In this document: positions 17,621-48,579 of the stretch, piece after piece
How the letters are laid out: every line of letters begins with the position of its first letter
Position numbering within the stretch: position 1 is the first letter of the stretch
DNA from: Basidiobolus meristosporus CBS 931.73
Taxonomy: Eukaryota > Fungi > Basidiobolomycota
DNA: 64,000 nucleotides
Assembly (NCBI GenBank): GCA_002104905.1
Contig: MCFE01000207.1
Location: 62,001 to 126,000 of the forward strand
Direction: 5' to 3'
Made by a program: the position numbers and the translations under genes
Notes under the pieces: model-generated
Databases searched by the model: none
The model's input: the letters and a program-made list of their open reading frames with translations, nothing else
What the model was told of the DNA's origin: nothing

Positions 17621-17666
17621 CTACTATGCACAAATACTGGACATAAGTATCACAATGGTAGTAATG

Positions 17667-21759: not shown

Positions 21760-24480
21760 TATTCAATTAGTATTTCTGCGGTAATGTTCTGGTTCCACAA
21801 CTTTGATGGGAACCCAATGGCTTTATGCCACTGTTCATTCACTGGTTCCCACACATCTTGGTCTTCAGCTGGCACTGCAAGGTCTAGCTCCTCATCTGCC
21901 AGCCTTTGCAATAGGTCCTTGCAACATTCCAGTATGTTTTCTTGAGCACTGCTCATGAAGAAGTGCTGCAACCTCTTGGTGTGCCAATTAATGTCCAAAG
22001 CTCCACTAAAGGCATTGTGATAGTTCTTCAAGCTCTTGACATTGTAGCCTTATCTGTTAGTGGGATCTCCAATCTGTCAACAATGAAGGCTGTGGAGGCT
22101 GTGGTAGACAAATTGCCTCTTTCAGCAAACTCATCTACCTTGCTGGAGTGTAGCTCAACTGGCTGCACTTCCAACTCATGTGAAAACAGCTGCTTTCTTG
22201 TTGGTAATTCTTCTTGACTATGATGGGATTCAGACTCTTCCTGGCTTGCAGTGTTAATTGGTGAGAACTGCAGTTTTTTTGCATGCCTACCTGTCTCAGG
22301 CTTGGGTAAATATTTTTCCCTTGACCTTTTCCATTATCTCTGCCAGGTCTTTCACTGCTACTTTGACAGGGTGCTTCTTGAGTGGTACTACACCTTTTCC
22401 TTGATAAATATTGTGTTGTTACATCTGTGTCTGCCTGCTTATCCTTGGTTGGCACTCTTCCAGCTACCTGACATCTCTTTGACGCTTTTCTGGAGCTTTT
22501 AGCTCTGGTTGTAATGGGCTATTGAGGAAGTTGCTGGTTTTTAGCCATGGCACCCTTGTTCTTATGGTTTTAATAGTTTCTGCTATTCTTAAGATACTAG
22601 ACTTGTTCCGTTGGATAGTGCCACATTGAGCCATGAGTGCCATATGATGCCATAGTGTGCCAAAGGGGTAAAGTGAGCTTATACTTGGCCACAGAGTGTG
22701 AAACATAGATCTGCATCTTCATGTAAAGCAGCCCCTGTGTTTCACCCATTGAGCTGGAAAAAGTCCATTTTTTTACCTTTTTTTTTGAATCAATGTCATG
22801 CAGGATGTGTAAGAGCACAAAAAGATATAAGACATGCATTGGGTACTCAATACCCATGGCACTCTGAATCTAGCTCCTGTAGCTTGTATCATGTCACAAA
22901 TATGAATGGCACTATCTTGGTCCACTGGTACTATCTGGCACTATAAGTGCTTTGTACAGATCTTACTTTAGGGCTAGTATTTAAATATAGTGCCTGATAG
23001 TACCGGTGGACCAAGATAGTGCCATTCATTTTTGTGACATGATACAAGCTACAGGAGCTAGATTCAGAGTGCCATGGGTATTGAGTACCAGATGCATATC
23101 TTCAGTCTGCTTGTGCTCTAACATATCCTGCACAACATTGATTCAAAAAAAAAGGTCAAAAAATGGATTTTCTCCAACACAATGGGTGAAACACAGGGGC
23201 TGCTTTGCATGAAGATGCGGAGCTATGTTTCACACCCTGTGGCCAGGTAGAGGCTCAATTGGACTCTCTGGCATACTATGGCATCATTTGGCACTCATGG
23301 CTCAATGTGGCACTATCCAACAGAACAAGTCTACTTTGTTAGCATACCAACGCTGGCACAAAATCTGTTAGCCCATGTGAATCCGGGATAATGCTCATGG
23401 AACAAGTCAAGTGCATTCTACTTGGCCTTGAGTTCCTGATGGTCCCATGGTATGTTGGCCTTATGGTGATGGCATGCTAGACTTCTGATAGCCTCTTGTA
23501 TTTCAGCCTACTCTTCACTATTGCACTCAATGGCTTCACAGAACTTCAATGTCTTTTGAATTTTAGGCTTTAGTATAAACACCACATTGTCTCCCTCCCA
23601 CACTGTGATAAATTTTTCTGTGGGCTCTATATTTGGGCATTGTTATTGTGCTTCAAAGACTGTACAGTGTTCCTCTGCTGTTACATTGCAAAATGGCACA
23701 ATTCTTGGTTGTGACATTGAGCTACTTGAGTTCCTTCTTTGCAGCAAAGATACTGCTTTCTCTACCTGGGATATTGATTGCTCTTCACATATTATCCCCT
23801 CATCTGGTTTCTGGACTATTTCCTGATTTCTCTGGGCCATAGCGGGAAGAGTGCCAATAAGGGACAAGCAGGCAGACATGGATGCACCAGCGCTACATTT
23901 ATCAAGAAAAAAGCATAGTACCACTCAAGTAGCACTCAGTCAAAGTAGCAGTGAAGGACCCGGCAGTGGTAAAGATAAGCGGCTTTCTCAGGAGCCTGCT
24001 TTATCTACTGGGTATATAAATTGCTTTATACATATTATCTGCGCATCCTGTTTCTGGACTATTTCCTGATTTTGTGGGCCATTGCATCTATTCCATCAGC
24101 CACTGCACCTAATTGCCTTATTAATGCTTTGGTATGAGCTGACAATATACTTGCTGATATGGGTGGTGGTAATGTTATTATGGCCACTTGCTGGTCTTCA
24201 ACTTAGAGTACTGTGTTTGCTACATTCTCATCTGCCTGAGCATAACCATCACCTTGTAGCTCCACAGAGATTCTCCATTGCCTACTTGACTGAGAGCCTG
24301 AGGAGTCCACATAATATCCTTCAATGGGCACACTGTCCACAGGGTCTTTTTTGTATATAGCCCCACTTGTTGCACTGAATGTCAAAGCAAGCTGTTGTCC
24401 AACCATTCTTCTGATGCCATCAGTTGTGGTGTTTAGTTGAGAACCAGACAACTTTGCTTTATTTTTTGGTGGCATATATA
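21760..24480 (-). pseudogene. CACTA-associated ORF2 (unknown protein: coiled coil + helical domain), disrupted
   Basis: The same minus-strand peptides recur in at least 6 copies (MPPKNKAK.., RQLGAVADRIDAMAQRNQEIV.., WANIQEA..KYLKNSRNY.., HFFMSSAQEN..WEPVNE). Boundaries approximate. Confidence 0.65.
22599..23332. mobile_element. Foldback (long-TIR MITE-like) element copy 1, 734 bp
   Basis: AGACTTGTTCC...GAACAAGTCT, ~347 bp inverted arms, 40 bp spacer, TSD ACT/ACT. Empty-site homologs at ~7190 and ~40255. Confidence 0.93.
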
Positions 24481-25110
24481 TTAAAGTGAATGAAACTAAA
24501 GGGAAAATACTGTTGTTAATATGTGTGTACGTGGTGCCACAACTATATTTATATTGCTTACTATGGCAGGTCATCATTGAATCTTACATTCATGTAGGTG
24601 CAATGTCTCCAATACAAGACTGTCTTTAGCTCACATGAGTATTGACTAAAAAGCAATATAATGGTGTTACATTGTTGAAGGTCAAACTGTTTGCCCCATG
24701 GACAAGACTACTTTGACTCAACACCTTAAGAGAAGAGAAAAAAGACCATGTGGCTAGAGTGGCAAGCCTCTCAGCCATGAAGTATGCAGCCTTCTGAATA
24801 TGGCATGCAGAGTGACAGCTCTGAAGGAGAAGGTTCACTGATGGATTTTGAGCATACCTCCCCTAATAACAGTACCATGTATGAGTCCCGCCAAGTCCTT
24901 ATATGCAATGAGGAAACACTTGTCAAAACAAATGCCAAGGATACTTTATGGAGCCAAGTGAGCGCAGTAATTCATCTACTTGTGAATGATGTAATGTTGT
25001 GGCTAGAGAAGTGGAGCATTTCCACTAATAACAGTAATGGGGGCTTTGAGGATTTATTATTACTTCCTGCCAAAATCACACCAGGATGCAACTTACCATG
25101 TACATGATAC

Positions 25111-28100
25111 TGTTATGATCTGCTGCTTGAATGTTCAAGTTAGATCAGTTTTTAGTCAAATCAATTAGTATATGTCTAGGTTATCAGTATATCAGTATTA
25201 TCTATGATATCAGTGGCATTAGTCAGCAAATGAATCAGCAGATCCTTATCAGACAGAAATAGATATATTAAGTAGGATCTTACTGGGTGAGGATGATGCA
25301 ATCAAATGAGTCATCAGCCACAACCTATATTAGGAAATACAATTAGTCAGCAATTGATCTGGAAAAATGTATATAAGGTGCTGCTGGAACCTCAATAAAA
25401 ATCAGTTCAAGTTTTAGTGAATACAATACTAGCTAAACTCCCTATTCCTCTACAACTCTTATACCAAGACTTGTAACATTGGTAGCAGCAATAACCAGAA
25501 ACCTCCCTCCTAAAGAAAGAAGAAACCACCCTCAAGATGTTGGACAATCAAGAATGGACGTATGCCATGCAGCAAATCCTGGCCCAACAGCAACAGTTAC
25601 TCCAGATCCTCAGCCAACAGCAACAAGGAAAGACTACCATGGCTCAGAACCAGCAAAGCCCTGTTAAGAGCAACTTTAGTGTGAAGGTCAACCGGTACCG
25701 TAGCAGAGTCAATGAAAACCTGGGAACTTGGCTCTTTCAGATTGAAAAAGCTTTTAAAACTAAAGAAATTGCTCCAGAAAGCAAGTTGCATTATGCAGCT
25801 TCTTACCTGGCAGATGCAGCTTTACAGTGGTACCACAATAAGATCAGGTTGGCCACTATGATGGGATGCTCTACAATCTCTACCTGGGATGAGTTTGTGT
25901 CGGAAATTCAGGATGCTTTTGAACCTCCACACCAGCAGACACTACTAAGAAGGAAGTTAAAGACACTCAGACAGAAAGGAATGGTGCAAGAATACATCTA
26001 TGAGTACAGATATCTACTTGGACAAATTGAAAGAATGGACCCCTTGGATCAAGTTGAATACTTTGTTGATGGGTTGAAAGAAAGAACTTGCAAGGAAGTG
26101 AATTACCAAAGACCTCAGACTATTGAAGAAGCCATCAAGATTGCCATTGACTATGATTCAGCTATGTTTGGAGTTGGGAAGCCTACAGTTTCTAATCAGA
26201 AAGGCTACAATCATTATGAAAGAAGACAATCAGAAGCAGTACCAATGGAAATAGATGCTATGCAGAAGAATCCTACCTCAGAAGAATGTAAGAAGAAAGG
26301 ACTTTGCTTCAATTGCCACCAGCAAGGACATATTGCAAAGTACTGCCCTCAGAGAAGAAATGGACACCAGCTAACAAGAACCTTCAATCATATTGAGTCC
26401 CATGAACACAGTAATGTTGAAGATGTGCTTGAAGAAGACTCAGAACTCACCTTCCATATGACAGAAGAGTACTTGTCCCAAAAGACCTCAAACTCAGGGA
26501 AGTTATTGTACTTGAATGGAGTAATCAATGGAGTACCTGCCAAGATCATGATTGACTCAGGAGCATTGCATGAGTACATGCCAGAGCAATTTGCCTTGAA
26601 AGCTGGAATCAACTTGAAACCTACCAAATCAACTTCAGTCTCCACAGCTGATGGGAACTCTCACATAATCAACTGTATTACCCAGCCAGTAAGAATGAAG
26701 ATCAATGACTATGAAGAAGACCTACAGGCTTATATATTTGGGAACTGCAAGTTTGACCTTGTACTTGGAAAAACCTGGCTATTTTGTTGTAATCCATCAA
26801 TCAACTGAAGAACCCATGCTACTCAGATCCAAAAAGACAACAAGACCTATGAGCTATTACCTGCCAGGCTGGATTTCAACTTGGTCAATTTCAGTAAGTG
26901 TGAGACAAGTGAACTTAGCAAGACCCAGTTCTGTAGAGCACTTAGAAAAGGCAACCAGATATTCCTCATGGCTGATTTACAGGAGGATTCCACTACCCCA
27001 ACACCCCAGCAGGTCCAGACTCTGTTGAAGAAATATTTGGACATGTTTCCAGATGAGCTTGTAAGCCTACCACCAGTCAGAGACGTGGATCATGCCATTG
27101 ACACAGGAGATAGCCCTCCAGTGAGCAAGACACCTTACAGAATAAGTCCATTGGAATTGGAGGAAATGAAGAGACAAATTGATCAGCTATTGGAGCAAGG
27201 ATACATCAGGCCCAGCAAGTCACCCTGGGGAGCACCAGTACTTTTGTGAAAAAGAAGGATGGAACACTTAGGATGTGCATTGACTACAGAGCCCTGAACT
27301 CAGTTACCATCAAGAATAAGTACCCCATACCTTGGATTGATGAGCTTTTGGACCAACTTAATGGAGCCACTATTTTCAGCAAGATTGACCTCATGTCAGG
27401 ATACAACCAGATTAGGGTGAAGCCAGAAGACATCCCTAAGACAGCATTCAGGACCAGATATAGACATTACAAGTACTTAGTCATGAGTTTTGGCCTCACT
27501 AATGCCCCTGCAACTTTCATGACCCTGATGCAGACTGTCTTCCAGGAGTACTTAGACAAGTTTGTCATAATCTACCTAGATGATATACTGATATACATCA
27601 AGACAGAAGAGGATCACTTGGTGCACATTGAAAAGGTCTTGAAGAAGCTAAGAGAGAACAAGCTTTATGGCAAGCTACCCAAGTGTGAATTCTTCAAGGA
27701 ACACATAGAATATCTGGGACACATAGTGACTAGCACAGGAGTAACCTTAGACTTCAAGAAGGTGGAAGTAATCAAGAATTTGAAGCAGCCCCATAGCATA
27801 TCAGAACTCAGATCATTCCTTGGAATGGTTTCCTATTATTGGAGATTTGTCAAGTCTTTTGCAAGTATTGCAGCCCCTTTAACTGATACCCTCAAGAAAG
27901 ACAATGCCTACAAGTGGGACATAGCTTGTGAGACTGCCTTCCAGATGCTCAAGAATGAACTTGCTAAGCTGCCAAGCTTAAGAATACCAGACTTCAGAAA
28001 AGAGTTCACTCTGTGCACAGATGCTTCAGATTATGTACTTGGTGGAGTGCTGAGCCAAGAACACAAGGGAAAGGACTACCTTGTTGCCTTTGAATCCAAG

Positions 28101-30047
28101 AAACTGAACTCAGCAGAACAAAACTATCCAGTCCATGAGAAGGAGATGCTTGCTATAATACACTGTTTGAAGACATGGAGATGCTATATTGAAGGAGTCA
28201 TATGCACTGTGAAGACTGATCATGCCTCTCTCAAGTATATATTTACTCAGAAGGTACTCTCTAGAAGAATGACAAGATGGAGTGAATACATTCAGCAATT
28301 TGACCTGGAGATTTTCTACTGCCCTGGAAAAAACAACACAGTTGCTGATGCCTTATCAAGATTAGATCAAGTTGCACAACTCAACTTGGTGCATGAATCG
28401 GATTGGCCTAGCCTATTACCAAAGTACTTGGAGGACCAAGCCATTCCTAATGAGGTGGATGAAGATATCAAGAAGATAATCTGTGATGAAGCCAGCAAAT
28501 TTGTTGTAGAGGATGAAACACTCTACCAAATTGTTGATGGAAGCCCTATTGCCTATTGTCCTTATGTTGCTCACCTGGATTTAATACATAAACTACACAA
28601 TGGATATGGACATCTTGGGATTGAAGGAACCTATAGCCTTGTGAAAGCCAGAGCATGGTGGCCCAGAATGAAACACAATATTGAGAAGCTAGTGAAAACA
28701 TGCCCAAACTGCCAAATCAATCAAGGCCAGCCACAAAGAATTGCCAAACTCTTCCCTTTGGAGCCTGTAAGACCATTTGAGAGATGGGGAATGGACTTTA
28801 TTGGGAGACTGCCAACTACCAGGAAATGCAACCTTTGAATCCTAGTAGCAATTGACCATGCTACTATATGGCCAGTTGCTAAAGCTGTACCAATAGCCAG
28901 TGAACAAGAAGTTGCAAGTTTCATTTACCATGAGATCTTGATGAAGTTTGGATGCCCTGTGGAGATCTTATCCAATAGAGGTGCAAACTTTATGGCAAAG
29001 ACATTAGAGGCTTACCTGGAAATGCAGCAGATCAGACACTTGAAAACCTTGGCATATCACCCCAGAACTAATGGAGTCACTGAGCGGTTTATTGGATTAT
29101 TTGGAAAAATGCTGACCAAGTATGCAAATGAAGTTGTCAGTAGATGGGATGAGTATATAGACCAAGCGCTCTCTGCATGCAGAGTCAGAGTACACAACAC
29201 TACCCAGCAATCACCATTTTGCTTAGTTTATGGATGTGAACCAAGGATTCCAGGAGATCTCACACAACCAAAACTTACAGACACCTTAGCAGATGAACTC
29301 AGTCAGCCAAGTAGACACCAGCAACTGGAACAAAGACGCCAAGAGGCACAGACCAAAGTATCTCAAAGTGCACAAAAGATGAAGCAGAGATTTGATAAGA
29401 CTATAGCACCAGAAGCATTGACAGTTGGGAACTTTGTATTGCTAAGAAACAACACTTGGAAGAAGTTTGAGCCACAATGGACAGGACCATTCAAGATCAT
29501 CAGAGAATGTCCATTTGCAACTTACCAACTGGTGGACAAACAAGGCAATATCCAGGAAGACTAAGTGCATAGGGACTGACTCAAGCTTGCAAGACTTGCT
29601 GCTAATACTGAACCATCAAGATATTGGTATCACAAGAAAAGAGATTCAGGAGAACCCTCTCAACTTTAGTAGGGGAGAATGTTATAATCTGCCGCTTGAA
29701 TGTTTAAGTTAGATCAGTTTTTAGTCAAATCAATTAGTATATGTTTAGGTTATCAGTATATCAGTATTATCTATGAAATCAGTAGCATTAGTCAGCAAAT
29801 GAATCAGCAGATCCTTATCAGCCAGAAATAGATATATTAAGTAGGATCTTATTGGGTGAGGATGATGCAATCAAATGAGTCATCAGCCACAACCTATATT
29901 AGGAAATACAATTAGTCAGCAATTGATCTGGCAAAATGTAAATAAGGAGCCGCTGGAACCTCAATAAAAATCAGTTCAAGTTTTAGTGAGTACAATATTA
30001 GCTAAACTCCCTATTCCTCTACAACTCTTATACCAAGACTTGTAACA
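25111..30047 (+). mobile_element. Full-length Ty3/Gypsy retrotransposon G1 (non-chromoviral), 4937 bp
   Basis: 368 bp LTRs 25111-25478 and 29680-30047 (TGTTA..TAACA; 14 differences), PBS TGGTAGCAG at 25480, PPT AGGGGAGAA at 29671-29679, 4 bp TSD ATAC. Confidence 0.97.
25537..29670 (+). pseudogene. G1 gag-pol (gag, zinc knuckle, protease, RT, RNase H, integrase) with a few lesions
   Basis: CFNCHQQGHIAKYC, IMIDSGA, IYLDDIL, LCTDASD, GHLG..CPNC, GMDFIG, TERF. Lesions: stops at ~26806, ~28836, ~29562, ~29577; 1 nt frameshift at ~27245; catalytic SDRG reads SNRG. Confidence 0.93.
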
Positions 30048-33000
30048 ATACAAATGCACAAGTATCATGTGGCTGGCAACATATAATCCAAATACTGTCC
30101 TGATTCCAGCATGTGTTAACAGTTTCATGGCATTCACATCTAAAAATGCTACCATTGTAACATGTCCAAATTGTCAGGAATCCACCACCATTGAGGGAAC
30201 GCATTGATCACACTCTGGATACATTCAAGTCATACCCCATCTGAGGAAACTGATGCAGTCTGCCAGATATTGCAAAGCTATATAGTACTACACTCTGTAT
30301 CAATCAAGAGCAAACATATCCAATATATTTGATGGCAAACATTACAAACAGCTAAGAAGCGAGGGCTACTTTGAAGGCATAAATGACCATGCCATTGCTT
30401 CAGCACCTGATAGAATCTCATTAAACAAGTACTCTGCCACCAAATCCTGCTGGCCACTGATTCTCATCAATCTGAATCTGCCACCCATCTTATGGTATCA
30501 GAGCAATAATCTGATGGTGGTATCACTGGTATCTGGGCCTAAATCCCAGTCCAACCAGGAAAGCTACCTGTATCCATTGCTGAATGATTATTGTATGCTT
30601 TCCAGCGGGATAATGGTAAATGGCTGTGATGTAAAAGCACAAATTATTATCTGCATTGGAGATACCTCAGCCATCAGGAAGATAGCAGGCTTTTCCAGGC
30701 ACATAGGACAGCATTGCTGTTGAATGTGTGAGGTCCAGGGGATTTACTCTATAGCTCACACACATTATTATTACCTAAACACCAGCACTAAGAAAATCAT
30801 CTTTGCTCAGAGAGAACCTACAGAACTAAGCATGCAATTGCAGCAAAGTTGGCAAGCTATAAGTCATTGGCCAGAATATAGAATCAATTGGAAACTGGAG
30901 ATACTTAAGATAGAGAGTATCTGTTGGGGCAAAAGCTTTCCACTGGGAGCAATGCATTTGCTTTTCAATAATATCCCTATACTGATGACCTAGTTGTACA
31001 TGGGGCATTTCAAGCTAAATGAGCCTTTTCAGATACCAAAGAAATTTGAAAGAATTGGCAATATATTACAAAGTATTGGCTACCCTAAATACTTCTCACA
31101 GGCTCCAATCAATATTCATATGCATATGCAACAATACAAATGCAAAGACTGTATGAGCTGGATGTGTATTTATTTAAGTGGTGTTCTGAAGCCATTCCTA
31201 CCAAGAGTACATTGGAAACAATGGCAGTCATATGTTGACATTGTAGGAATATTTATCCAGAAGCAGATCATCAATTCTAACTTGAGGCATCTAGAGCGGC
31301 TGTGTGAGGAGTTTGTGACAGGGTTTGAGTGGCCATACTACAAACATACAGCTGAATGTGTAGATATCTACCGCTACTGTATCCATTCTCTACTCCATCT
31401 TGCATGGTGCATGGAGAATATTGGGCCTTGCTTCATCTTTTGGGAGTTTCCTATGGAGTGAATGTGTGGGGAGATTGGAAGACAAGTCTAGTTGCAGGTA
31501 CTACCATATCTTAATCTCATCAGGAATATTACCTTCAAGTCTGTCATGGATGTGATGAGTTAGCACATGGAGGACAGCCAGAAAGAGTTGAAAAATATTG
31601 AGAACAAATGTGCACATGGCGACACCTATGCCTATGGCATTAAGAAGCTAAGCAGCCCCAATGCGTCAGTAGTCAGTTAAGTAATGCAAAGTTGGGCTGG
31701 GTGCAACAAGCAACTAATTTTTATCAGAAAAACTCCACCAAGATATGTTGGATTTCTCATGGTCACAAGCCAACTTCTACACCATTCCATATGGAATTCA
31801 CACCAACAAAAGCCAGAGTACACCTATAAGTGGGACTAGAATCCAGCAGGGAAAGGATTATTGGCTAAATACCAAGAAGTTCTTTGTGGATATTCAAGAG
31901 GTATTCATGGCAGAAGTGGTGGCAACCAAGCATATGTTTGCAGCATGTATATGTTACCAGCAGTATTAGGTATATCAAAACTTTGCAAGTATCACATTAA
32001 ACAGCCGTAAAGTTGAGGTGATAGAAGTATGTCAATTGCAGCAGGTGTGCATAATTGGAGAGGTTGGTAAGCGGGAGGCCATAGTTTTTTTGATTCAAAC
32101 TATATATGGAATACACAAGGTAGTAGTGGGTAAGCAAACAAAGAGGGGTGATTCTACAGTGGAATAAATGAATTGCACAAGGGGAGGTAGAAAAAGAAAA
32201 TACCATTTGGTAAATTGGTATTGTAGCATCATACAGAACCAGTGGTTGACTGTCATACTGCCAATATAATGCCATCAGAGTCTTGCTGTGACACCATCAA
32301 AATACCTTCAAGTTTCTTGCCATATAAGGCTATTGGATGTCCTGACCAGCAGGATCCACTTAAAATAGTTATAGAGTGCTGAAAGACCGCAACAATACCA
32401 TGCAAATATTGTGACAGCACTGATAAAATATTGTCAAGTTTTATCCCTTTTATTGGTTGTAAAACTAGCAAAACACCGTCATGATCCCGCCATAAGATTG
32501 TAGGGAGCGTCACTAATTCCAAGCTGCTGTTATTATGATGGTCTCTAAATGGGATCTTGACGGCTGATTCAGATTGGATCCACCTGTAGGACCAAATTAT
32601 TTTTGTAGGGTAACCTTTGGATCTTAACTGCTTGCATCCTTGTCATTATATCAATATGGTAAAAGCTCCTGCTACTCTAGCTGCCTAGGTGCTCCAAGTG
32701 TCTCCAAATGCCTCTATGTGCCTTGTGCACTACCCAGAAAAGCTCCTTGATGGCAGGTCCTAGGTGTCACTGTTGAAGGTAGGTGCAGTGATCAACTGCT
32801 AATCAATAAGGGAGAAATGTTACTGACAGAAGGGATGATTTACTGATGAGGAATTGGCCTCCCTAAAATACATTTCCTGATTGCCAAGTGACCACCTTTG
32901 ATAAGATTCTAGAGGGTTTCAGGCATCAGTGTGATTTTTGATGACACTACTATGGGCTAAGAATACTCCTAGAAGGTCCCAGAAGGTTCTAAAAGGCACA

Positions 33001-33113
33001 GCACATCCAACCCATCAGAGATCAGTAGTATGAAACCTGTGTGGTGTAGAGATACCATATTTGGCATTTAAACAGTAGGGATGGTAACACAATCTTTGGC
33101 CATAGACTTGTTC

Positions 33114-33837
33114 TGTTGGATAGTGCCACATTGAGCCATGAGTGCCAAATGATGCCATAGTGTGCCAGAGAGGCCAAGTGAGCCTATACTTGGCCACAGA
33201 GGGTGAAACATGGATCTGCATCCTCATGCAAAGTAGCCACTCTGTTTCACCTAAGATGCAGGAGAAAATACATTTTTTGACGTTTTTTTGCAGATCAATG
33301 TTGTACAGGATGTGTAAGAGCACAGAAGAACTGAAGACATGCATCAGGTACTCAATACCCATGGCACTCTGAATCTAGCTCCTGTGGCCTGTAACATGTC
33401 ACAAAAATGAATGACACTATCTTGGTCCACTGGTACTATCTGGCACTATATTTAATTATTAGCCCCAAAGTAAGATCTATACAAAGCACTTATAGTGCCA
33501 GATAGTACCAGTGGACCAAGATAATGCCATGCATTTTTGTGACATGTTACAAGCCACAGGAGCTAGACTCAGAGTGCCATGGGTATTGAGTACCAAATGC
33601 ATATTTTCAATTCTTTTGTGCTCTTACGCATCCTGCACAACATTGACCTAAAAATAAAGGTCAAAAAATGGATTTTCTCCAACGCAATTGGTGAAACACA
33701 GGGGCTGCTTTGCATGAAGATGCAGAGCTATGTTTCACACTCTGTGGCCAGATAGAGGCTCACTTCGCCTCTCTGGCACACTATGGCATCATTTGGCACT
33801 CATGGCTCAATGTGGCACTATCCAATGGAACAAGTCT
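33114..33837. mobile_element. Foldback element copy 2
   Basis: Same arms and spacer; TSD CAT/CAT; inserted in LTR-A sequence that continues on both sides. Confidence 0.92.
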
Positions 33838-33904
33838 CATGAGTGATGGGTACTGACACAGGTATTTGCCCAATGTGGATATATATACTGATTGCAAAGA
33901 TGAT

Positions 33905-34390: not shown

Positions 34391-34562
34391 GCACATGACA
34401 TTCTTTGCCTTCTACAACTGGGCTAAATCAAGTTGGTGAAGAAATTCAATTCCTTCTGGAGAGTTCTATTACATTCTATCAGCCTCTTGAAAGCTCTAAG
34501 TCAACATTGTACAATGAAATATATTATGGAAGCTTTCCATTGTATTTTTGTAGCTCAATACT

Positions 34563-35297
34563 AGACTTGTTCCGTTGGATAGTGCCACATTGAGCCATGA
34601 GTGCCAAATAATGCCATAGTGTGCCAGAGAGGCCAAGTGAGCCTCTACCTGGCCACAGAGTGTGAAACATAGCTCTGCATCTTCATGCAAAGCAGCCCTT
34701 GTGCTTCACCCATTGTGCTAGAGAAAATCCATTTTTTTCCCTTTTTTTTTTGGATCAATTTTGTGCAGGATGTGTTAGAGCACATGCAGATTCAAGGTAT
34801 GCATCTGGTACTCAATACCCATGGCACTCTGAATCTAGCTCCTGTAGCTTGTATCATGTTACAAAAATGAATGGCACTATCTTGGTCCGCTGGTACTATC
34901 TGGCACTATATTTAAATATTAGCACTAGAGTAAGATCTATACAAAGCACGTATAGTGCCAGATAGTACCAGTGGACCAAGATAGTGCCATTCATTTTTGT
35001 AACATGATACAAGCTACAGGAGCTAGATTCAGAGTGCCATGAGTATTGAGTACCAGATGCATATCTTCAGTTCTCCTGTGCTCTTACACATCCTGAGCTA
35101 CATTGATCCACAAAAAAAGGTCAAAAAATGGAAATTCTCCTGCGCAATGGGTGAAACACAGGGGCTGCTTTACATGAAGATGCAGAGCTATGTTTCACAC
35201 TCACTGGCCAAGTGTAGGCTCACTTTACCTCTCTGGCACATGACGGCATCATTTGGCACTCATAGCTCAATGTGGCACTATCCAATGGAATAAGTCT
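34563..35297. mobile_element. Foldback element copy 3
   Basis: Same structure; flanks ACT/AGT (imperfect TSD). Confidence 0.9.
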
Positions 35298-35299
35298 AG

Positions 35300-35636
35300 T
35301 AGCTCCAGGACACATGACATAGTCGGCCAATCAACTGACCCCTGGCATATCCCCATGTGTCAATCCAGTCTGTTCTGTAGTAAATTGGCATCTTGACTCA
35401 CGTACTATGCCTCATCCTAGAATCCCATTAGTATTAGCCAATGTCTCTTTGTATTCATGTTGCCAGGAAGTATATATATTCCTATCTCCCCTGATGCATT
35501 CTTAGTCCAGTAAACACAGGGCTTGAATCAACAGCATTGCTTTGGAATCTGCCTTACATTGCTGATCCATACCTACATTCTTTCCTGGTCTTGCCTTGCC
35601 CAGATTTACTATCCTGCCTTGACTCTATTCATAACA
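35300..35636 (+). repeat. Putative LTR end (family LTR-C); related piece at 44019-~44190 in reverse orientation
   Basis: Ends ..CTTGCCTTGCCCAG..CTCTATTCATAACA, similar to the revcomp of TGTAATGGATAGAACAAG..GGCAAGGTAGGACAAGGAAAGG at 44019. Start not determined. Confidence 0.5.
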
Positions 35637-38560
35637 CCATCAGTGAGCCTTCTTCTTCAGAGTTGACACTTGGGGTGCAATATTCAGAAGGCTGAGGTGA
35701 GCCTAAAGGTGTGACAAACTCACCTAGCTCAGTTTGCCCAAGGTGACAGGCACAGCAAAGTGCTATTACAGAAGCCTCAAGTGGCCAGCCAGATAGTGTT
35801 GGTATACTAGAGACTGACAAATGATCAAATTTGATTTATGTAGCAAAACGCTGTCCATGATCATTATAATACAATGCATGCCCCATTGCTGAGAGGCTTG
35901 CTTCAATAGCCACATGGTCTTTTTTCACTTCTCTTACTGCATTGAAGTGAAGTAATCTTCTCAAACAGGCCAATGGTCTGAAACACAACAGTGTAATGCT
36001 ATTATATTGTGTTTTTGTCAGTACTCATTTGGATGTAAGATAGTCTTATATTTGATACATTACACCAACATTAATGTAAGATTCAATGATGACCTACCAT
36101 AGCAAGCATTATAAGCAGAGTTGTGGCACCACGCACACATGTACTAATAGCAGTATTTTCCCTTTAGTTTGACCCAATTCCATATATAGTCTGCAAAAAA
36201 AATAGCAACATTGTGTGGTTCCCAACTAAACCCCACTACTGACAGCAGCAGAAGAACAGTTTGCAACAGCTTGCTCTGGCAATCAGCTCAACATTCAGAG
36301 CTACATTCAAAAAAGGACATGTTAATAGTGAGTCCACTGAAGCCAATAATGTTGTCTCCTCAGGCTCTTATTCAAGTATACAAATAAGAACTGCTGCAGA
36401 CCGGTAAGCTGACTATAGTGATCAGGCAGATGCAAATGAAGCAAACACCGTACCTTTGGTTGAAGACCAGTAAGTGGCCATCAAAACATCACCATCACCT
36501 GTAATAGAAAGTAAGTTATCAGCTCATACAAAGCATCATTGAGGCAATTAGATGCTGTGGCTGATAGGATAGATGCAAAGACTCAGAGAAATCCAGAAAG
36601 GTCCTAAGATGGGATGAGTTGATAATATGAGTAGATCAATCATTATCCCATACAAAGAACTCAGCATTTTTGTGGTAACAAAGGATCTTAAATATTCCAA
36701 TATTACAGCCAAGAACTGAGCCATTTCCCAATGTAACATCAGAGCAACACCCAACAGTCCTTGAACCACAACAATAGTGCCAATAGATAAAGCCCTCACA
36801 AAAACCTGTTGCAGTTTGATACAGAGAGACAGAGGTGTTCAAACCCAAGTCTAAGAATCAGCTGATATTGAAGATCCATGAAGCTGTTGGGTTCAATGAT
36901 GAAGATTGGGCTAATATTCAAAAGGCCATTGTGAGTATAGCATGACATCAACCCAAGGCCAGCATACTATGGGACCATCAATAGCTCAAGGCCAGGTAGA
37001 ATGAGCTTATCTGACTCTATAAATATTATCCTGGAATTGCAGTCAGCAAACAGATTTTGGACCTACATTGGTGTGCTAGGAAAGTAACTCAAGAATAGCC
37101 AAAAAATTAAAGGCAGAAGAACAAGGGTACCACTGCTAAAAATCAACAGCTTCCTCAATGGTGTGTCACAAGCAAGGCTGAAAGCTCTATACAAGTGGCA
37201 AAGATATGTCAGATTGCCTGAAGAGGACTAGTACTAGAGACAAGCATACAAATCAGAAGCATCAGTGCATCACTAATAAAAGAAGCTAGTTCATTACAAG
37301 CACTTGATGGCATCAGGGGTAAAAGACCTAACTGTTGTTATGTCCACAGCTCTCTCAGGAGCCTGTTACAGGCAAAGGTGCCAAACATGCATCAAAGAAA
37401 TATTAAGTTACTGGTTGAGTACTTGCTGGGGATAAGCTGGCCAGAACTTATGAACCAGTGCAGCATTCATCAAGGAGAAAATTTGGTAGCATACAAGAAA
37501 CACTCAGCAAAAGTAGTAGTGATAGACTTAGCAGTGATAAAGGTAAAGGTAAAGAGAAAATAATGTCCCCAAGCCAGAGATAGGAAGCATGAGAAAAAAG
37601 CTTTTATTCTCACCAATTAGTGCTGTCAGCCTGGAGCAGGCTGATCCCTATAATAGCCAAGAAGAAGTATACACAAGACAAAACTGATCTCAGAAGAGTA
37701 AGATGTGCTGTCATTACAGCTACACACTAGTAAGGTATATAAGCTTGCAGAGATAAGCAACTGATCAACCACTACCACCACATACTTCATTGAACAGAGT
37801 AAAGATTCCATTGATACACAAAGCAACAATCTCAAGATATCAAAAGACTATCACAATGCCTATGGTAGAGCTCAGGAATATTAAGTGGCACATGAAGAAG
37901 TTGCAGCACTTGTTTGAGATTGGTACTCAAGAAAATGTACTTACATATTGCAACAATTTATTGCAATACTGGTAGTTGAGATGCTAGACCTTGTAGTGCC
38001 AGCTGAATACCAGGATCCATGGGAACCAGTGAATGAACAGTTGCATAATGAAGTGTGGTTCTCACTAAATCATAGAAAAAGTGCATCACAGAACAAATAC
38101 CTATTGAATGGTGGATTTTAATGGAGTTACTTGTCAAGTGTGGCATTGAGCCTAAAGTCAGTGTAGCATATAGGGACTTATATAGGTTAGTACAGCTTTC
38201 AATTGATTATATAATTGAAGTTTCAGTAGAGATATACCATTTGTATGCATGAAAAGTAGCAAAATTGATTGATTCATGAAGCAATGAGTATGAAGAAGTG
38301 ACAATAGCCAATCAATTTATATAAATGTAGGAGGTGGTTTTATGTCCAGAATCATAATGTGAGTGAATTGACAGAGAGCCAGCTCAAAGTCACAGATTTA
38401 TTGTTATGACTAAAATTTGATAAGTTTATTGTGAAATTTAGTATACAATAATTTCTTTGATAGTCTTTGCACAATATCCCAATGGGAACAGTACCTCCTA
38501 GTAATAGGATTTAATCTTGTGGAGGCCTTTTGACAGGATCATCACATTTATTCTTAAAGA
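35637..38560 (-). mobile_element. CACTA-like element E (reverse orientation; transposase N-terminus, ORF2, degenerate left end)
   Basis: Reverse complement of 21307-24860, more diverged. Confidence 0.75.
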
Positions 38561-38689
38561 AATATTACAGCAAAGTATAAGTATCTTATTCATCCAATGG
38601 ATGTAAATACTGCATTTCTGAATGGGGGCCTTGATATGATGTGCAAATAAACCGGCCTGATTGGTTTGTAGACCAAGAAACCCCACATG

Positions 38690-40540
38690 GACTGCACTGT
38701 TAGGAAACCTCTATAGAGTTCAAAATACTCACCAAGAGCCTAGTCTTTTGAGTTTTTGACATTGTTGCTTTGTCTATCAGTGGAGTCCCCACTCTGTCTA
38801 CAATGGAGGATGTGGATGGAGTGGTAGACAAGTTGCTGTTCACTGCAAACTCATCTGCCTCACTGGAGTGTAGCTTGACTGACTGAGCTTCCAACTCTTA
38901 GCAAAGCAGCTTTTGTCTTGTTGGTCAATCTTACTGGTTATTATGGGATTCAGCCTATTCTGGACTGGCAACTTTGATTAGTGGGAGCTGCAGCTTTATC
39001 TTACACTTCCCTCTCTCTGGCCAGAAAATAGACTTGTTCCGTTGGATAGTGCCATATTGAGCCATGGGTGCCAAATAGTGCCATTGCATGCCAGAAAGGC
39101 ATAGCCAACCTAAACCTGGCCACTAAGTGTGAAACATGACTCTTCATCTTCATGCAAAGCAGCCCCTGTGCTTCACCCATTGCGCTGGAGAATATCCATT
39201 TTTTGACCTTTTTTTTTGTATCAATGTTGTGCAGGATGTGTAAGAGCACAACAAGATTGAAGACATACATTCAATACTCAATACCCATAGCACTCTGAAT
39301 CTAGCTCCTGTGACTTGTATCATGTCACAAAAATGCACGGCACTATCTTGGTCCGCTGTTACTATCTGGCACTATATTTAAATATTAGCCCTAAAGTAAA
39401 ACCTATATAAAGTACTTATAGTGCCAGATAGTAACAGTGGACCAAGATAGTGCCATTCATTTTTGTGACATGATACAAGCCACAGGAGCTAGATTCAAAG
39501 TGCCATGGGTATTGAGTATTGGATGCATGTCTTCAATTTTGTTGTGCTCTTACACATCCTGCACAACATTGATACAAAAAAAAAGGTCAAAAAATGGATA
39601 TTCTGCAGCACAATGGGTGAAAGACAGGGGCTGCTTTGCATGAAGATGTAGAGCTATGTTTCACACTCTGTGGCCATGTATAGGCTTACTAGGCCTCCTT
39701 GGCACACTATGGCATCATTTGGCACTCATGGCTCAATGTGGCACTATCCAACAGAACAGGTCTAATATCTTCTCACTTTCACATAACCTTTACCATTACC
39801 AAGTCTTCAGAGGTACTGTGACTGAGCGCTTCTTGTACTGAACTACATTTTCCCCTTGATAAATGCTGCACTGATGCATGTGTTTCTACCTGCTGGTCCC
39901 TTGCAGGCACTGACCTGACAACACAACACTTCTTTGCCTCTTGTTCAGAACCTTTACCTGCTTGTGAGAGGCTCCAGAGAAAGCTGTGGGCTTTTATGGC
40001 TGTTTTTTGTTTCACCAAAAGTGTAACTGAGTGCTTCTTGTAATGGACAAGCTTCTTTTTTCAGTAGTGATGAACTGATTCATCAAGTCTTGCATGCTTG
40101 TCTCTTACTGGCACTCTTCTGGCTACCTGACATTTGTATGCTACTTGCACAGAGCCTTCAGTCCTGCTTGTGACAAGCTGTTGAGGAAGCCGCTGGTTTT
40201 TAGTGGCAGCACCCTTGTTCTTCTACCTTTGATACTTTCTGCTATTCTGGAAATACTTTCTTAGCATAACATTGCTGTGCCAAAATAAGTTTGCTTACTT
40301 AAGTCTAGGATTATGCTCATGGAACTGGTCAAGCACATTCTGCTTTGCCCTGAGTTCCTGATAGACCAATGATATGCTGGCCTTGAGGTGATTCCTTGCT
40401 AGATTTCTAACAGCCTCTTGAATATTAGCCCATGCTTCAGCATTACACTCAGCACATTCCCAGGCCTTCAATGCCTTTTGACTTTTAGACTTGGGTATAA
40501 ACTGCTGCAATACTCTGATAACTATTGGAACTGATGTGGA
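38690..40540 (+). mobile_element. CACTA-like fragment F (ORF2 middle, minus strand) carrying foldback copy 4
   Basis: Aligns with 6450-7300; ORF 40295-40510 (WANIQEAVRNLARNHLKAS). Confidence 0.78.
39030..39763. mobile_element. Foldback element copy 4
   Basis: Same structure; TSD AAT/AAT. Confidence 0.92.
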
Positions 40541-40544
40541 GAAC

Positions 40545-42310
40545 TAGTGAATTTACCTGTCATTCACTTTTATACATGTTGGTCAAAAAAAAGCCACCTA
40601 CAATACCACAGCTCAGAGGTACTACTGGGAAAACACGTATTATGATATCCAACACTTTGTTGAGTCATCTGTAGCCTGCCAGAAGAGATCCTCCAAGCAT
40701 TATGAAGAGCCACTGCATCCTACTTACACAATCTGTCTATGGCAAAAGGTTGGTATTGACCTTGTCCACATGCAAACAGCTTAATCAGAAAAGTACCTGA
40801 TTATTGCTAGAGATGACATTAGTGGATGGGCAGAGGCTTGAGCCTTGCGCAACAACAAGAGCCATACCATACGGAGATTTATACTTGAAGACATCATCTG
40901 CAGATTTGGCGGCATCCAACAGTCTGTTGCTGACAGAGGAGAGATGACATCCCAAATGATCTAGGAGTTGTCCTCAAAGTACAAGATACACATTGCTTTT
41001 ACAACAGCGTACCACCCTCAAGCCAATGGAATGATAGAGAGGAGACATGGACCATTGGTGAACTCTCTTGTCAAGACCAGTGAGAATAACACAACACTGT
41101 GGCCACAGCAATTACATCTTGCACTCTGGGCAGATAGAAATACTACCAAGAAAACAACTGGATTATTGACATTCAAGCTACCCTATGGACATGACTGCAT
41201 ACTACCAGTTGAGTTAAACACAGTCACTTGGAACTCATTGAATTGGAGATCCAATATGCAGACTGAAGACCTCCTTGCAACTCGCATATGGCAACTTGAT
41301 CACCATGATTTGAATATCAGCAGAGCTGCTGAACAACTTAAGGATACACAACTGAAGAGCAAGGAGCCCTTTGACAAATAACACCCAACAAGTCCAAAAC
41401 TACTATCACTAGGAGACCCAGTATTACTCTATGATTCCACCTTGGACAAACAATGGAGTTGGAAGTTTGACAACAAATGGACTGGCCCCTACCTCATTTC
41501 CAAAGTGATTGGAAATGGAAGTTATTACATATCCAAGCTTGACAACACCCAGTTGAGAGCACCAGTTGCAGGAAACCAGCTTAAGTTATTCAAGCATAGG
41601 AATTTCACACATCAAGATTAATTTGCTTTGACCTAAGCACAAAGCTGCAACAGGGGTGGATGTAGTGGGGTGACAGTGACACCCACTGACAGATGTGGTC
41701 ATTCCCATATTTTCTACTTCCCTATATCTCTACTACACTTATTCTAGTTTTATCCCATTTGTTGTACCTGATGAGTACTATCCCATAAGCTGGTTGACTA
41801 TCCCACCTGCTTACCTTATTACATAAGTTACCCCTCACTTTATGCAAGATTACTAGCTATAAGTGCTTCTATATTAGGCAAGAACCTGCACCAGTGCCCG
41901 TGACACATGATCAACCCGTGTCACCATCCCTACCATTTCTGTACCATATATGTTATCCCTATATTATACAGGCTTCAGAATACCAATTCCTGATTGGTTG
42001 GATGTGCTGCACCTCTTAGAACCTTCCGGCACCTACTTGGAAGATTCTTAGGTCATTCTGATGTCATAAAGATTGCTATTGATATCTGGAACCTTCTGGA
42101 ACACCATGATTAGTAATCAATTAGCCAGTAAGAAAAGTATTTAAGGGAGGCTATCCCTCAGCAATAAATCATCATCCCTTTTATCAATATACCAACTTGT
42201 TGATTAGTGTGATCACTGCTACCTGCTGCTACCTGAGCTTCCAACCCCAGACCACAGGACACTCCCAGAAAACCGTGCTGACAGCCAACTGACCTTGGAG
42301 GCACCACTTG
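40545..42310 (+). mobile_element. Gypsy 3' fragment: integrase, PPT and an LTR-A-related 3' LTR (from 41661)
   Basis: HVGQK..CQKR, GIDLVH, ARDDISGW, ADRG, AYHPQANGMIERRH, WTGPY motifs. AGGGGTGGA|TGTAGTGGGG; 41870-42030 aligns with LTR-A 2480-2640. LTR end approximate. Confidence 0.85.
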
Positions 42311-42779
42311 TGAGGAATACTCAGAGTAGGTTTCTATTATTATATTTGATTCTTTCCCAAGTTTGTTCTTGTACAGGCAAAGATACTCTTCTGTCTTTGT
42401 AACTATTGACCACAGCTGCATTCTCATCAAGTCCCTGCTGGTGTAGTATACAGTTGTTTTGACTTTGGAAGCTTTAGTACATTGTCATCTCAAAGGAGGC
42501 TGAACCCAGCACATACTTTTGTTAAGACACCAACTAAGTTGGGGATTGTAGCTCAATAGCTTTCCCTTGACAAGCTTGTGGCTTTATTCCCCATCACATT
42601 AGATTAGAGACAGAACCCAAGTATTCCCAACAAGCTTTTGTCAGAGATTATTGCACCCAGCAAACACCCCACACTCAAAAACTTGAGAAGTGTTGGATGT
42701 ATTTCTCCCTTGGACTTATACACCACCACAATGTTGGCACTGGTGATTGGCTTCTGGGAAAATATTCCTCAAATGGCAA

Positions 42780-44018
42780 TATTTGACTTCTAATGCTTCC
42801 AATGTACTCTTGGTTGATATGGCCTCAGAAGTCTACTTTTATACATTCATATCTAGCTCATCCAGTTCTTATACTTGCATTGTTGTATATGCATTTAATA
42901 CTGATTAATGCCTATGAGAAGTACTTTGGGTTGGACTGCATGAGCTTCTTTAGACAGTGTATTAATGGAGTATATCTGTAGTGTGAAAGATGCTTTCCTC
43001 CTATGGTTGTGGATTCCCGACAAGTTGGACACCTTGCAATGGTGGCATTTTCTGATGTGAATTCTATGCAATTGTTAACACATGCTGGTAATAGGTTAAT
43101 CTCCGGGTCATATGTTGTCAACCATCTGATGGCTGTTCTACCATGTATAAAATAATTCTTATCTCTTAATGACTATGATAAGAAGTAGGAGTAAATCCTC
43201 AAAGCCCCCATTACTGCTATTAGTGGAAACACTCCGCTTCTGTAACCAGAACATCACATCATTCACAAGTAGATGAGTTATACGGCTCATTTGGCTCCAT
43301 AAAGTATCCATGACATTTTTCTCTGTGGGTGTTGTGTCATTGCAAATTGGGATTTTGCCAGGCTCATGCAAGGTACTATTTTCAGGAGAGAAAGACTTAC
43401 AACCCACCATTGAGCCTTCTTCCTCAGAGCTATCACTCTGCATGCCATATTCAGAAGGCTGAGATGAGCCTAAAGATGTCATAAACTCACCTGACTCAGT
43501 TTGGGTAAGGTGACAAGCATGACTAGGAGCTGTAATAGAAGTATCAAGTGGCGGACCAGATATTGTTGGTATGGTGATCCCTGAGGAAGGGTCAAATATC
43601 ACTTGTGTGGCAAAACACTAGCCATCATCCTTGCATTACTTACTATGCTGTCTGAATGCTTCATGGCTGAGAGGCTTGTTACAATAGCTACATGCCTTTT
43701 TTCTCTTCTGTCACCACATTAAATCAAGGTAGTTATATCAATGGGGCAAACATATTGACACTCAACAGTGTAATGCCATTATACCACTTTTTTGTGAATT
43801 TGCAGGTAAATAAGACAGTCTTGTATTTGAGACATTGCACCAGCATGGATGTAAGATTCAACAATGACCCCCATGGTAGGCATTGTAAGTAAAGTGGTGG
43901 CACCACATACACACCTATATATAGCACTATTACCCCTTTTGTGTGGCTTACTTCCATATATGTCACCAAAAAACAAAGCAAAGTCATCTGTTACCAACTC
44001 AGCCCCACTGTAGACAGC
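42780..44018 (-). mobile_element. CACTA-like fragment G (transposase N-terminal half on minus strand, intergenic region)
   Basis: ORFs 43159-43602 and 42912-43121 match the transposase N-terminus (PACVNNC..CPTCRES). Confidence 0.82.
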
Positions 44019-44194
44019 TGTAATGGATAGAACAAGTCAGGGGAGTAGAGCTAGGCAAGGTAGGACAAGGAAAGGACTTAAGTGTGGAGCAACAAGGCAA
44101 GGCTGATTATTCAAGACCATTATTTATCAGACTAAGGAATAAATAAGGGGGGGTAGAACTAGTGAATGATGAATGCTCAAATATGACTTGCATG

Positions 44195-47100
44195 GCAAGA
44201 TACTGGCTGTGATCTTTGTGAAACTTCCTATGCTGTCTGTATGCTTCATAGCCAAGAAGCTTGCTACAATAGCCACATAGTCATTTTTCTCTTCTCTTAC
44301 AGCATTGAGTCAAAGAGGTCTTGTCAATGGGGCAAACATTTTGACCTTCATCAATGTATTGCTATTATATTCCTTTTTGGTCAATAGTTGAGACATTGCA
44401 CTTACATGAATGCAAGACGCAATGATGACCTGCCTAAGTAAGCATTATAAGTAAAGTTATGGCACCACATACACATGTATATATCACACTATTTCCCCTT
44501 TGGCTTGACTCACTTCCATATTTATGCTACCAAAAAATGAAGTAAAGTTGTCTGGATCCCAACTAAGCCCTACCGCTGACAGCAGCAGAAGAATGGTTGG
44601 AAAACAGCTTGCTTAGACATTCAGGGCAGTAGGCAGGGCTACATCCAAAAAAGGCTGTGTTGACAGTGTGTTCACTCAAGGTAACAATGTAAGCTCCTCA
44701 GGCTCTCAGTCAGGTACTTGTTTGAGAACCTCTGTGGAGCTTCAAGCTGACCATTATACTCAGGCACAGGAGTGTGTAGCAAATGCAGTACCTTCAGTTA
44801 TAGACCAACAAGTGGCCATCATAACATCATCACCACCCATGTTATGTATGTAGAGCAATCAATATTCCAGGTTGAGTAAATAGTATCTTTACTGCACAGA
44901 AGGAACTCAAGTAGCTCAATGTCACAGCCAAGAATTGGTCCATTTCCCAATGTAACAACAGAGGCACACCATACAGTCCTTGAAGCACAACAACAGTGCC
45001 CAAAGATAAAGCCCACAGCAAAACCAATCACAGCATGGGAGGGAGACAATGTGGTGTTTATACCAAAGCCTAAAAGTCAAAAGACATAGAAGATCTGTGA
45101 AGCCAATGAGTGCAATAATGAAGAGTGGGCCAATATCCAAGAGGCCATCAGAAGTCCAGCACAACATCACCTTACAGCCAGCATGCCCTGGGACCATCAG
45201 AAACTCATGGACAAGCAGAATACACTTGACTTGCTCTATGTGCATTATCCTGGGCTCATACAGGCAAACAGATCTTGGCCCAGCATTGGTATGCCAAGAA
45301 AGTATCTTAAAAATAGCAGAAACTATCAGAGGCAAAAGAATAAGGGTGCCATGGCTGAAAACCAGCAGCTTCCTCAAGAGCCGATTAGAGGCAGGGCCCA
45401 AAGCTCTAAACAAGTGTCAAAGCAACATCAGGTAGTGGGAAGAGTGCCAATAAGGGACAAGTAGGCAGACATGAATGCACCAGCGCAACATTTATCAAGA
45501 AAAAAGCACAGTACCACTCAAGAAGCACTCAGTCAAAGTAGCAGTGAAGGACCCGGCAGTGGTAAAGATAAGCGGCTTTCTCAGGAGCCTGCTTTCTCTG
45601 CTGGGGATATTGATTGCTCTATATATTAGACTTGCTCTGTTGGATAGTGCCACATTGAGCCATGAGTGCCAAATGATGCTGTCGTGTGCCAGAGAGGTAA
45701 AGTGAGCCTACACTTGGCCAGTGAGTGTGAAACATAGCTCTGCATCTTCATGTAAAGAAGCCCCTGTGTTTCACCCATTGCGCAGGAGAAAATCCATTTT
45801 TTGACCTTTTTTTGTGGATCAATGTAGCTCAGGATGTGTAAGAGCACAGGAGAACTGAAGATATGCATCTGGTACTCAATACTCATGGCACTCTGAATCT
45901 AGCTCCTGTAGCTTGTATCATATCACAAAAATGAATGGCACTATCTTGGTCCACTGCTACTATCTGGCACTATATTTAAATATTAGCCCTAAAGTAAGAT
46001 CTATACAAAGCACTTATAGTGCCTGATAGTACCAGTGGACCAAGATAGTGCCATTCATTTTTGTGACATGATACAAGCTACAGGGGCTAGATTCAGAGTG
46101 CCATAGGTATTGAGTACCAGATGCATATCTTCAATCTGCTTGTGCTCTATCACATCCTGCATAACATTGATCCAAAAAAAAAGGTCAAAAAATGGATTTT
46201 CTCTAGCACAATGGGTGAAACACAGGGGCTGCTTTCCATGAAGATGCAGAGCTATGTTTCACACTCTGTGGCCAGGTAGAGGCTCACTTGGCCTCTCTGG
46301 TACACTATGGCATCATTTTGCACTCATGGCTCAATGTGGCACTATCCAATGGAACAAGTCTATTATCTGCCCATCCTGTTTCTGGACTATTTCCTAATTT
46401 TCTGGGCCATTGCATCTATTCTATCAGCCACTGCACCTAATTGCTTCATCAATGCTTTGGTATGAGCTGACAACATACTTGCTATTTTGGGTGGTGGTGA
46501 TGTTATGACTGCCACCTTCTGGTCTTCAACTGAAGGTACTGCATTTGCTACACTGTCATCTGCCTGAGCATAACGGTTGGTTTGAGGCTCTGCAGAGGTT
46601 CTCAATTGCCTACTTGACTAAGAGCTTGCCAAGCCCTCATTATTACCTTCAGTGGGCACACTATCCAAAGAGCCTTTTTTGGTTGTAGCCCCACTTGTGG
46701 TACAGAATGTCAAAGCAAGCTGCTGTCCAACTATTCTTCTACTGCTGTTAGTGGTAGGGTTTGCAAACATATGCAATAGATTCAATGGCAATCATCACAA
46801 ACAACTAAGAAATAAGGGCTACCTTGAAGGTATGTATGTCTATGCCTTTGCCTTGGCACATGATGGACTCTCATTAGCAAGTACTCTACTAGCAAATCTT
46901 GCTGGCCACTAATTCCTGTCAACCTGAATATGCTGCCTATCTTGTGGTATCAGAGCAGAAATCTGTTGGCAGTCTTACTGGTGTCTGGGTCTAAATCACT
47001 GTTCAACCTAGATAGCTACCAGTATTCATTGCTGGATGAATCTTGTATGATTTCCAGCAGGATAACAGTTGTCATGTCAAAATGCATATTATTGTCTGCA

Positions 47101-48570: not shown

Positions 48571-48579
48571 GTGTAACAT

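Follow-up and report, generated by a model that had tools for sequence, protein, structure and literature searches.

Within the PHIS superfamily of transposons, the group named Pangu, which corresponds to Harbinger2 in Repbase (Kojima 2025, PMC12730594), is defined by target site duplications (TSDs) of the form 5'-ANT-3', which have been verified by comparison with empty paralogous sites (Han et al. 2015, Mob DNA 6:12, PMC4482050). Members of this group are distributed among plants, fungi, and animals, are bounded by terminal inverted repeats (TIRs) of 11-40 bp that usually start with AG or GG, and contain two open reading frames (ORFs), one encoding a DDE transposase and the other a protein without a known motif, while in the transposase tree the group adjoins bacterial IS5, whose target it also has (Han et al. 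2015, PMC4482050). Table S3 of the same study gives ANT or AWT for the Pangu families seen there, with transposases assigned to DDE_Tnp_4 or DDE_Tnp_1_6, and it has been noted in the same work that the TSD-defined groups of the PHIS superfamily do not always fit the tree cleanly. PIF-like TIRs, in turn, have been defined by the core G(N)5GTT (Grzebelus et al., PMC2213677), and huge expansions of PIF-Harbinger and CMC-EnSpm elements have been reported in Basidiobolus (Muszewska et al. 2017, PMC5751038). This article concerns a family of palindromic foldback elements in a 64,000-nt stretch of the genome of Basidiobolus meristosporus CBS 931.73 (GenBank assembly GCA_002104905.1, contig MCFE01000207.1, positions 62,001 to 126,000 of the forward strand), which is referred to as the window and in which positions are counted from the first letter.

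The family is most probably a non-autonomous hairpin (foldback) MITE (miniature inverted-repeat transposable element) family within the Pangu/Harbinger2 group of the PHIS superfamily, an assignment to which a probability of about 0.8 is given and which draws on tests of the TSDs and the termini together with the definition in the literature. In a small sample of five TSDs, all of 3 bp, four fit ANT, with CAT as the exception, and all five end in T; AGAC starts all ten ends (AGAC...GTCT), in agreement with the AG or GG start of Pangu TIRs. From these features, we infer that a Pangu-clade transposase mobilises the family. An earlier interpretation of the same DNA, made from the letters without database searches and referred to here as the sequence-only reading, had proposed a non-autonomous family of an unidentified transposase lineage. 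The first half of that proposal is sound, as the foldback has no coding capacity; the second half is not supported, because A-N-T TSDs and AG ends are the hallmarks of Pangu, by which the lineage becomes identifiable. The same reading had named a match to a described family as an argument against itself, and what was found comes close to this, at the level of the group (Pangu) and not of the family. Until the transposase is tested, the elements are therefore most suitably classed as a new family within the Pangu/Harbinger2 group, which is already described.

The copies were located by an inverted-repeat scan over positions 22000-47000 and by searching the whole window with one copy in BLAST, which together identified exactly five copies. 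These are listed below, with the parts of copy 5 given separately.

Copy 1, 22599-23332, minus strand: 734 bp; TSD ACT/ACT at 22596-22598 and 23333-23335; on the plus strand, its loop is the reverse complement of the loops in the other four copies.
Copy 2, 33104-33837, plus strand: 734 bp; TSD CAT/CAT, the sole target departing from A-N-T.
Copy 3, 34563-35297, plus strand: 735 bp, with an extra T within a T-run; imperfect TSD ACT/AGT; arm order A..B; compared with copy 5, its loop is flipped.
Copy 4, 39030-39763, plus strand: 734 bp; TSD AAT/AAT; the most divergent of the five copies.
Copy 5, 45628-46361, plus strand: 734 bp; TSD ATT/ATT; its closest relative is copy 3.
Left arm of copy 5, 45628-45974, plus strand: terminus AGACTTG(C/T)TC(Y)(R)TTGGATAGTGCCA.
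Loop of copy 5, 45975-46014, unstranded: 40 nt; across the family, both orientations with respect to the arms occur.
Right arm of copy 5, 46015-46361, minus strand: 89% complementary to the left arm.

Five near-complete palindromes with 347-bp arms and a 40-bp spacer had been described in the sequence-only reading, and both searches bear this description out: the arms measure about 347 bp and are 87-90% complementary within each copy, exactly 40 nt separate them, and the five copies are 84-91% identical to one another. Four of the five starts given previously are correct, and that of copy 2 was placed 10 bp too far (33114 instead of 33104). Folded as single-stranded DNA, copy 5 forms one long hairpin (-346 kcal/mol, z = -41.6 against shuffles), and a search of the window against Rfam returned no RNA family. 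The length of the foldback is strictly conserved, with one indel against about 230 substitutions across the ten arms. No alignment exists between the flanks of different copies, which identifies the five as independent insertions of a mobile family and rules out segmental duplication as their origin. All five copies lie within 24 kb, the other 40 kb of the window being without a copy, a clustering that may reflect either local hopping or a preference for repeat-rich DNA.

At a threshold of three or fewer mismatches, the 26-nt terminus has 10 matches in the window, one per copy end, against 0.00 expected by chance, and the AGAC ends reported previously are present at each of them. The family terminus is the AG-starting AGACTTGTTCC, the outer 30-40 bp begin with AGACTTGTTCYRTTGGATAGTGCCA, and in the terminus AGACTTGTT position 1 is occupied by A and positions 7-9 by GTT, the latter matching the placement of GTT in the G(N)5GTT core.

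The target sites were characterized by aligning the joined flanks of the copies to uninterrupted paralogues in the window, where four of the five copies sit in repeated sequence. For copy 1, four paralogous empty sites (45302-, 7192+, 37084-, and 40256+) all read ...GAT[ACT]TT... with a single ACT, showing that the insertion consists of the 734-bp element and exactly one additional ACT. For copy 2, three empty paralogues (at about 11857, 8734, and 2521) are each 3 bp shorter than the joined flanks, and one of these empty sites reads GGC[CAT]GT. An exact 3-bp duplication is thus proven by empty sites for copies 1 and 2. The empty-site support is narrower than the sequence-only reading implied: the comparison is ambiguous for copy 5, where the host-repeat copy has a 2-bp indel in the AT run adjoining the site, and uninformative for copy 4, whose paralogues are only about 70% identical, and for copy 3 the window contains no paralogue of the empty site. 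The flanking triplets themselves (ACT, CAT, AAT, and ATT, with the imperfect ACT/AGT at copy 3) are as previously given, and a 3-bp TSD with AGAC...GTCT ends stands. The description of this TSD as variable is accurate in its length of 3 bp and requires amendment in its pattern: position 3 is T in all five duplications and position 1 is A in four, which gives A-N-T, a two-fold symmetric target. A duplication of TA, or the absence of any duplication, in copies across the genome had been named as an observation that would contradict the 3-bp reading; neither was encountered in the window, and TA is excluded by the empty sites of copy 1.

Searches for a coding partner were also conducted in the window. 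No coding element bounded by AGACTTGTTCC...GGAACAAGTCT and carrying a transposase was found there, no further termini were detected at three or fewer mismatches in 26 nt beyond the ten copy ends, and BLAST of one copy yielded no match in the window outside the five copies. One extra 11-mer with 1 mismatch occurs in the window, within the 1.57 expected by chance. Among 20 window ORFs scanned with Pfam (100-530 aa, with all long ones included), there was no PHIS ORF, the scanned ORFs showing gypsy or copia domains or nothing. Further afield, in collections without fungal genomes, a scan of viral and prokaryote genomes with the terminus gave 0 matches, five spurious arm ORFs had no exact match in the sequence collection, and a literature search with the terminus as a string returned primer noise only. 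A metagenome match to the terminus (L001 1025-1045) was rejected as a chance 21-mer inside a 1051-aa ORF on a bacterial-looking contig, unrelated to the element.

Several observations weigh against the Pangu assignment. The arms are 347 bp long, compared with 11-40 bp for published Pangu TIRs; the first position of the terminus is A, where PIF-like TIRs have G; no element in the window combines these ends with a gene for a transposase; and the target pattern is drawn from only five TSDs, of which CAT breaks A-N-T and ACT/AGT is imperfect. With respect to arm length, the TIR recognised by the transposase in such a foldback derivative may correspond to only the outer 11-25 bp.

Among the alternatives, the one that survives best, improbable as it is, attributes mobilisation to another branch of the PHIS superfamily, either canonical PIF/Harbinger or a Nuwa-like branch with relaxed target choice, in place of a Pangu-clade transposase. 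Such a mobiliser would suit the GTT at positions 7-9, which is similar to the cores of PIF-like TIRs, the great expansion of PIF-Harbinger in Basidiobolus (PMC5751038), and the observation that groups defined by TSDs are not always clean on the tree (Han et al. 2015, PMC4482050). The targets argue otherwise, since ANT is the stated hallmark of Pangu and none of the five TSDs corresponds to TWA (canonical), CWG (NuwaI), or TNA flanked by C and G (NuwaII). Canonical PIF/Harbinger of the Tourist type, which requires TTA or TAA, is rejected on these grounds, as are NuwaI, NuwaII, ISL2EU, and Spy, whose CWG, TNA between C and G, AT, or missing TSDs fit none of the five.

A source outside the PHIS superfamily has a slim chance and ranks next; the elements would then be MITEs either of CMC/EnSpm-CACTA, Zator, or Academ, superfamilies that likewise produce 3-bp TSDs, or of an as yet undescribed lineage. 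A 3-bp TSD, taken alone, is common to CMC/EnSpm-CACTA, Zator, and Academ, CMC-EnSpm is also hugely expanded in Basidiobolus (PMC5751038), and no partner transposase was found in the window. For Zator and Academ, the length of 3 bp (3-4 bp) is compatible with the family, and for CMC/EnSpm-CACTA it falls within the range of 2-4 bp. The ends decide against the latter, however, reading AGACT without CACTA or CCCTA at either side, and an A-N-T-biased target combined with AG-starting ends is exactly what has been published for Pangu. The sequence-only reading had likewise observed that the ends match neither the CCCTA element of this stretch nor typical Harbinger ends, and this is upheld by ends that are not of the CACTA type and targets that are not TWA.

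Very improbable is the view that the 3-bp duplication is a boundary artefact, the true element being either TAGAC...GTCTA, with 1 bp of target duplicated, or GAC...GTC, with TA duplicated as in Tc1/mariner (Stowaway). In four of the five copies, AGAC...GTCT is preceded by T and followed by A, allowing the inverted repeat to be extended by one base, and equally TA flanks GAC...GTC in four of the five. The TA version predicts empty sites of the form GATAC-TA-CTTT (GATACTACTTT), whereas GATACTTT stands at each of the four empty sites of copy 1, and the duplication of copy 2 would be TA/TC, by which this version is refuted. The 1-bp version predicts the same filled sequence at A-N-T targets and the same inserted length of 737 bp as the 3-bp version, but it requires two later mutations (in the end of copy 2 and the TSD of copy 3) against one and is disfavoured by parsimony. 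A 1-bp TSD is not known from any eukaryotic superfamily. A foldback of the FB/MuDR type can be dismissed, as 8-10 bp TSDs and arms of tandem sub-repeats are replaced here by a 3-bp TSD and dispersed GTGCCA motifs.

Beyond its classification, the Pangu-like family provides information on how long inverted arms change over time. Copies 3 and 5 are nearer to each other than to any other copy when their arms are swapped (94-96% identical in this arrangement): at 22 diagnostic sites the left arm of copy 3 agrees with the right arm of copy 5 and the right arm of copy 3 with the left arm of copy 5, the reverse being seen at 1 site, and the arms match at 661 of 694 positions swapped and at 617 of 694 unswapped. 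The loops of the two copies match at 37 of 40 positions on the same strand, compared with 15 of 40 as the reverse complement. Swapped arms with same-strand loops show that the loop has been inverted relative to the arms. The same discordance between arm and loop is seen between copies 1 and 5, and the copies form the isomer classes {1, 3} and {2, 5}, with copy 4 not placed in either. The diagnostic sites are all confined to the stretch from arm position 54 to 257. Over their inner 90 bp the arms do not differ in type, and in this region a crossover between arms would flip the loop tracelessly. In addition, derived substitutions common to both arms (10 in copy 4 and 6 in copy 2) suggest occasional arm-to-arm gene conversion in these two copies.

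Because the loop flips even between the two closest copies and the arms of one copy have derived changes in common, it has been considered whether recombination or repair mediated by a hairpin or cruciform might be a regular part of the life cycle, and whether a hairpin transcript, with its 347-bp stem in perfect register, could supply small RNAs against the parent Pangu element, in the manner of Mu killer against MuDR. This extension of the Pangu assignment, in which the foldback would be no mere passenger, is unlikely as a whole.

The arms also carry a recurrent motif, which is found in direct orientation as GTGCCA/TGCCA (arm positions 20, 39, (50), and 59) and in inverted orientation as TGGCAC (positions 259, 309, and 338). 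GTGCCA/TGGCAC occurs 6 times per 347-bp arm (about 17 per kb) compared with 0.68 per kb elsewhere in the window, a 25-fold enrichment, and a longer form, ATAGTGCCA, adjoins the terminus and, inverted, adjoins the loop. Since subterminal binding sites exist in other cut-and-paste elements, these motifs are regarded as putative sites at which the transposase or its partner protein binds.

On this basis, a transposition cycle can be proposed in which the transposase, perhaps with the partner protein, would bind the AG-starting ends (AGACTTGTTCC...) and probably the phased subterminal GTGCCA motifs, after which the 734-bp unit would be excised. A 3-nt staggered cut would then be made at an A-N-T target, and integration of the element followed by repair would yield the 3-bp TSD. 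The long arms would be a structural by-product of the element; as inverted repeats, they would permit recombination or repair between them, which would flip the 40-bp loop and occasionally copy changes from one arm to the other.

The age of the insertions can be approached through private substitutions, which are fewest in copies 3 and 5 (1.6% each), intermediate in copy 1 (2.4%), and most numerous in copies 2 and 4 (3.6% each), and through the gypsy element at 25.1-30.0 kb, whose long terminal repeats (LTRs) are 96.2% identical, corresponding to 1.9% per LTR. The suggestion that the foldbacks are among the youngest insertions is, by this comparison, plausible for copies 3 and 5, perhaps fair for copy 1, and less clear for copies 2 and 4. 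The copies were also said to lie inside other transposable elements and never to be interrupted, and within the window this is the case: copies 1, 4, and 5 are inserted in one repeat family with direct terminal repeats and copy 2 in another multi-copy repeat, and all five are uninterrupted. The observed/expected ratio of CpG is 0.19 in the window and 0.06-0.15 in the foldback copies, with GpC at 1.13-1.43, and at the one CpG that the consensus arm contains (CCG, positions 10-12), seven of the ten ends show decay to CTG or CCA, a pattern as would be expected from methylation-driven deamination.

The repeat family that hosts copies 1, 4, and 5 occupies the following positions.

Host repeat family of copies 1, 4, and 5: 4849-7965, 21307-24789, 35676-38555, 38600-40500, and 43400-46762.

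The first copy of this host repeat has direct terminal repeats of about 0.8 kb (4849-5694 and 7420-7965) around a 1.7-kb core, whose ORFs (155-190 aa) gave no Pfam match, and the family may be a non-autonomous LTR element. The Ty3/gypsy element used above for comparison extends over 25099-30047, contains ORFs for gag, protease, reverse transcriptase, RNase H, and integrase, and is bounded by 368-bp LTRs at 25111-25478 and 29680-30047. A second gypsy copy at 13840-17632 is inverted, 85% identical, and has similar flanks on both sides. Fragments of copia type (RVT_2, rve, gag_pre-integrs, and Retrotran_gag_2) are present at 400-4700 and 48500-55000, with 75-85% identity between the two ends of the window.

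A conspicuous, abundant repeat of an early-diverging fungal genome can in this way be assigned to a described but little-studied transposon group. If the assignment is true, the Pangu group would be extended to Zoopagomycota, repeat annotation is helped, and the mislabelling of the family as a new superfamily is avoided; current knowledge is not overturned. The family also represents a clean natural example of the effects of long inverted arms, comprising loop flip-flop, concerted arm change, and strict conservation of length, and its phased GTGCCA motifs are testable candidates for sites bound by the Pangu transposase or by its partner of unknown function.

In comparison with known systems, the family resembles Pangu (Harbinger2) in its A-N-T 3-bp TSD fixed by empty sites, its AG termini, and its occurrence in a fungus, and in both cases non-autonomous copies outnumber coding ones. 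Published Pangu families have TIRs of 11-40 bp and come, among fungi, from ascomycetes and basidiomycetes, whereas the family described here belongs to a zoopagomycete and forms a near-perfect 734-bp palindrome with 347-bp arms. With Tourist MITEs such as mPing, mPIF, and the Medicago MtPH MITEs, it has in common the form of short non-coding derivatives, 3-bp TSDs, and GTT at positions 7-9; those elements are moved in trans by a PHIS transposase and a second protein, and they differ in their TWA (TTA/TAA) targets, in TIRs of 14-25 bp starting with G, and in not forming whole-length hairpins. Other foldbacks, including Drosophila FB and nematode Tm1 in MuDR/Mutator, Galileo in P, and Tetris, likewise have very long arms, a short middle, the capacity to form hairpins, and internal arm motifs, but their TSDs of 7-10 bp and variable-length arms of tandem sub-repeats stand in contrast to the fixed 734-735 bp, the 3-bp TSD, and the scattered motifs found here. 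Bacterial IS5, finally, has the 5'-ANT-3' target in common with Pangu, to which it is adjacent in the transposase tree (Han et al. 2015, PMC4482050), and it differs from the family in B. meristosporus in that the latter, as a probable Pangu derivative, would belong to a eukaryotic, nuclear, two-gene system with MITEs.

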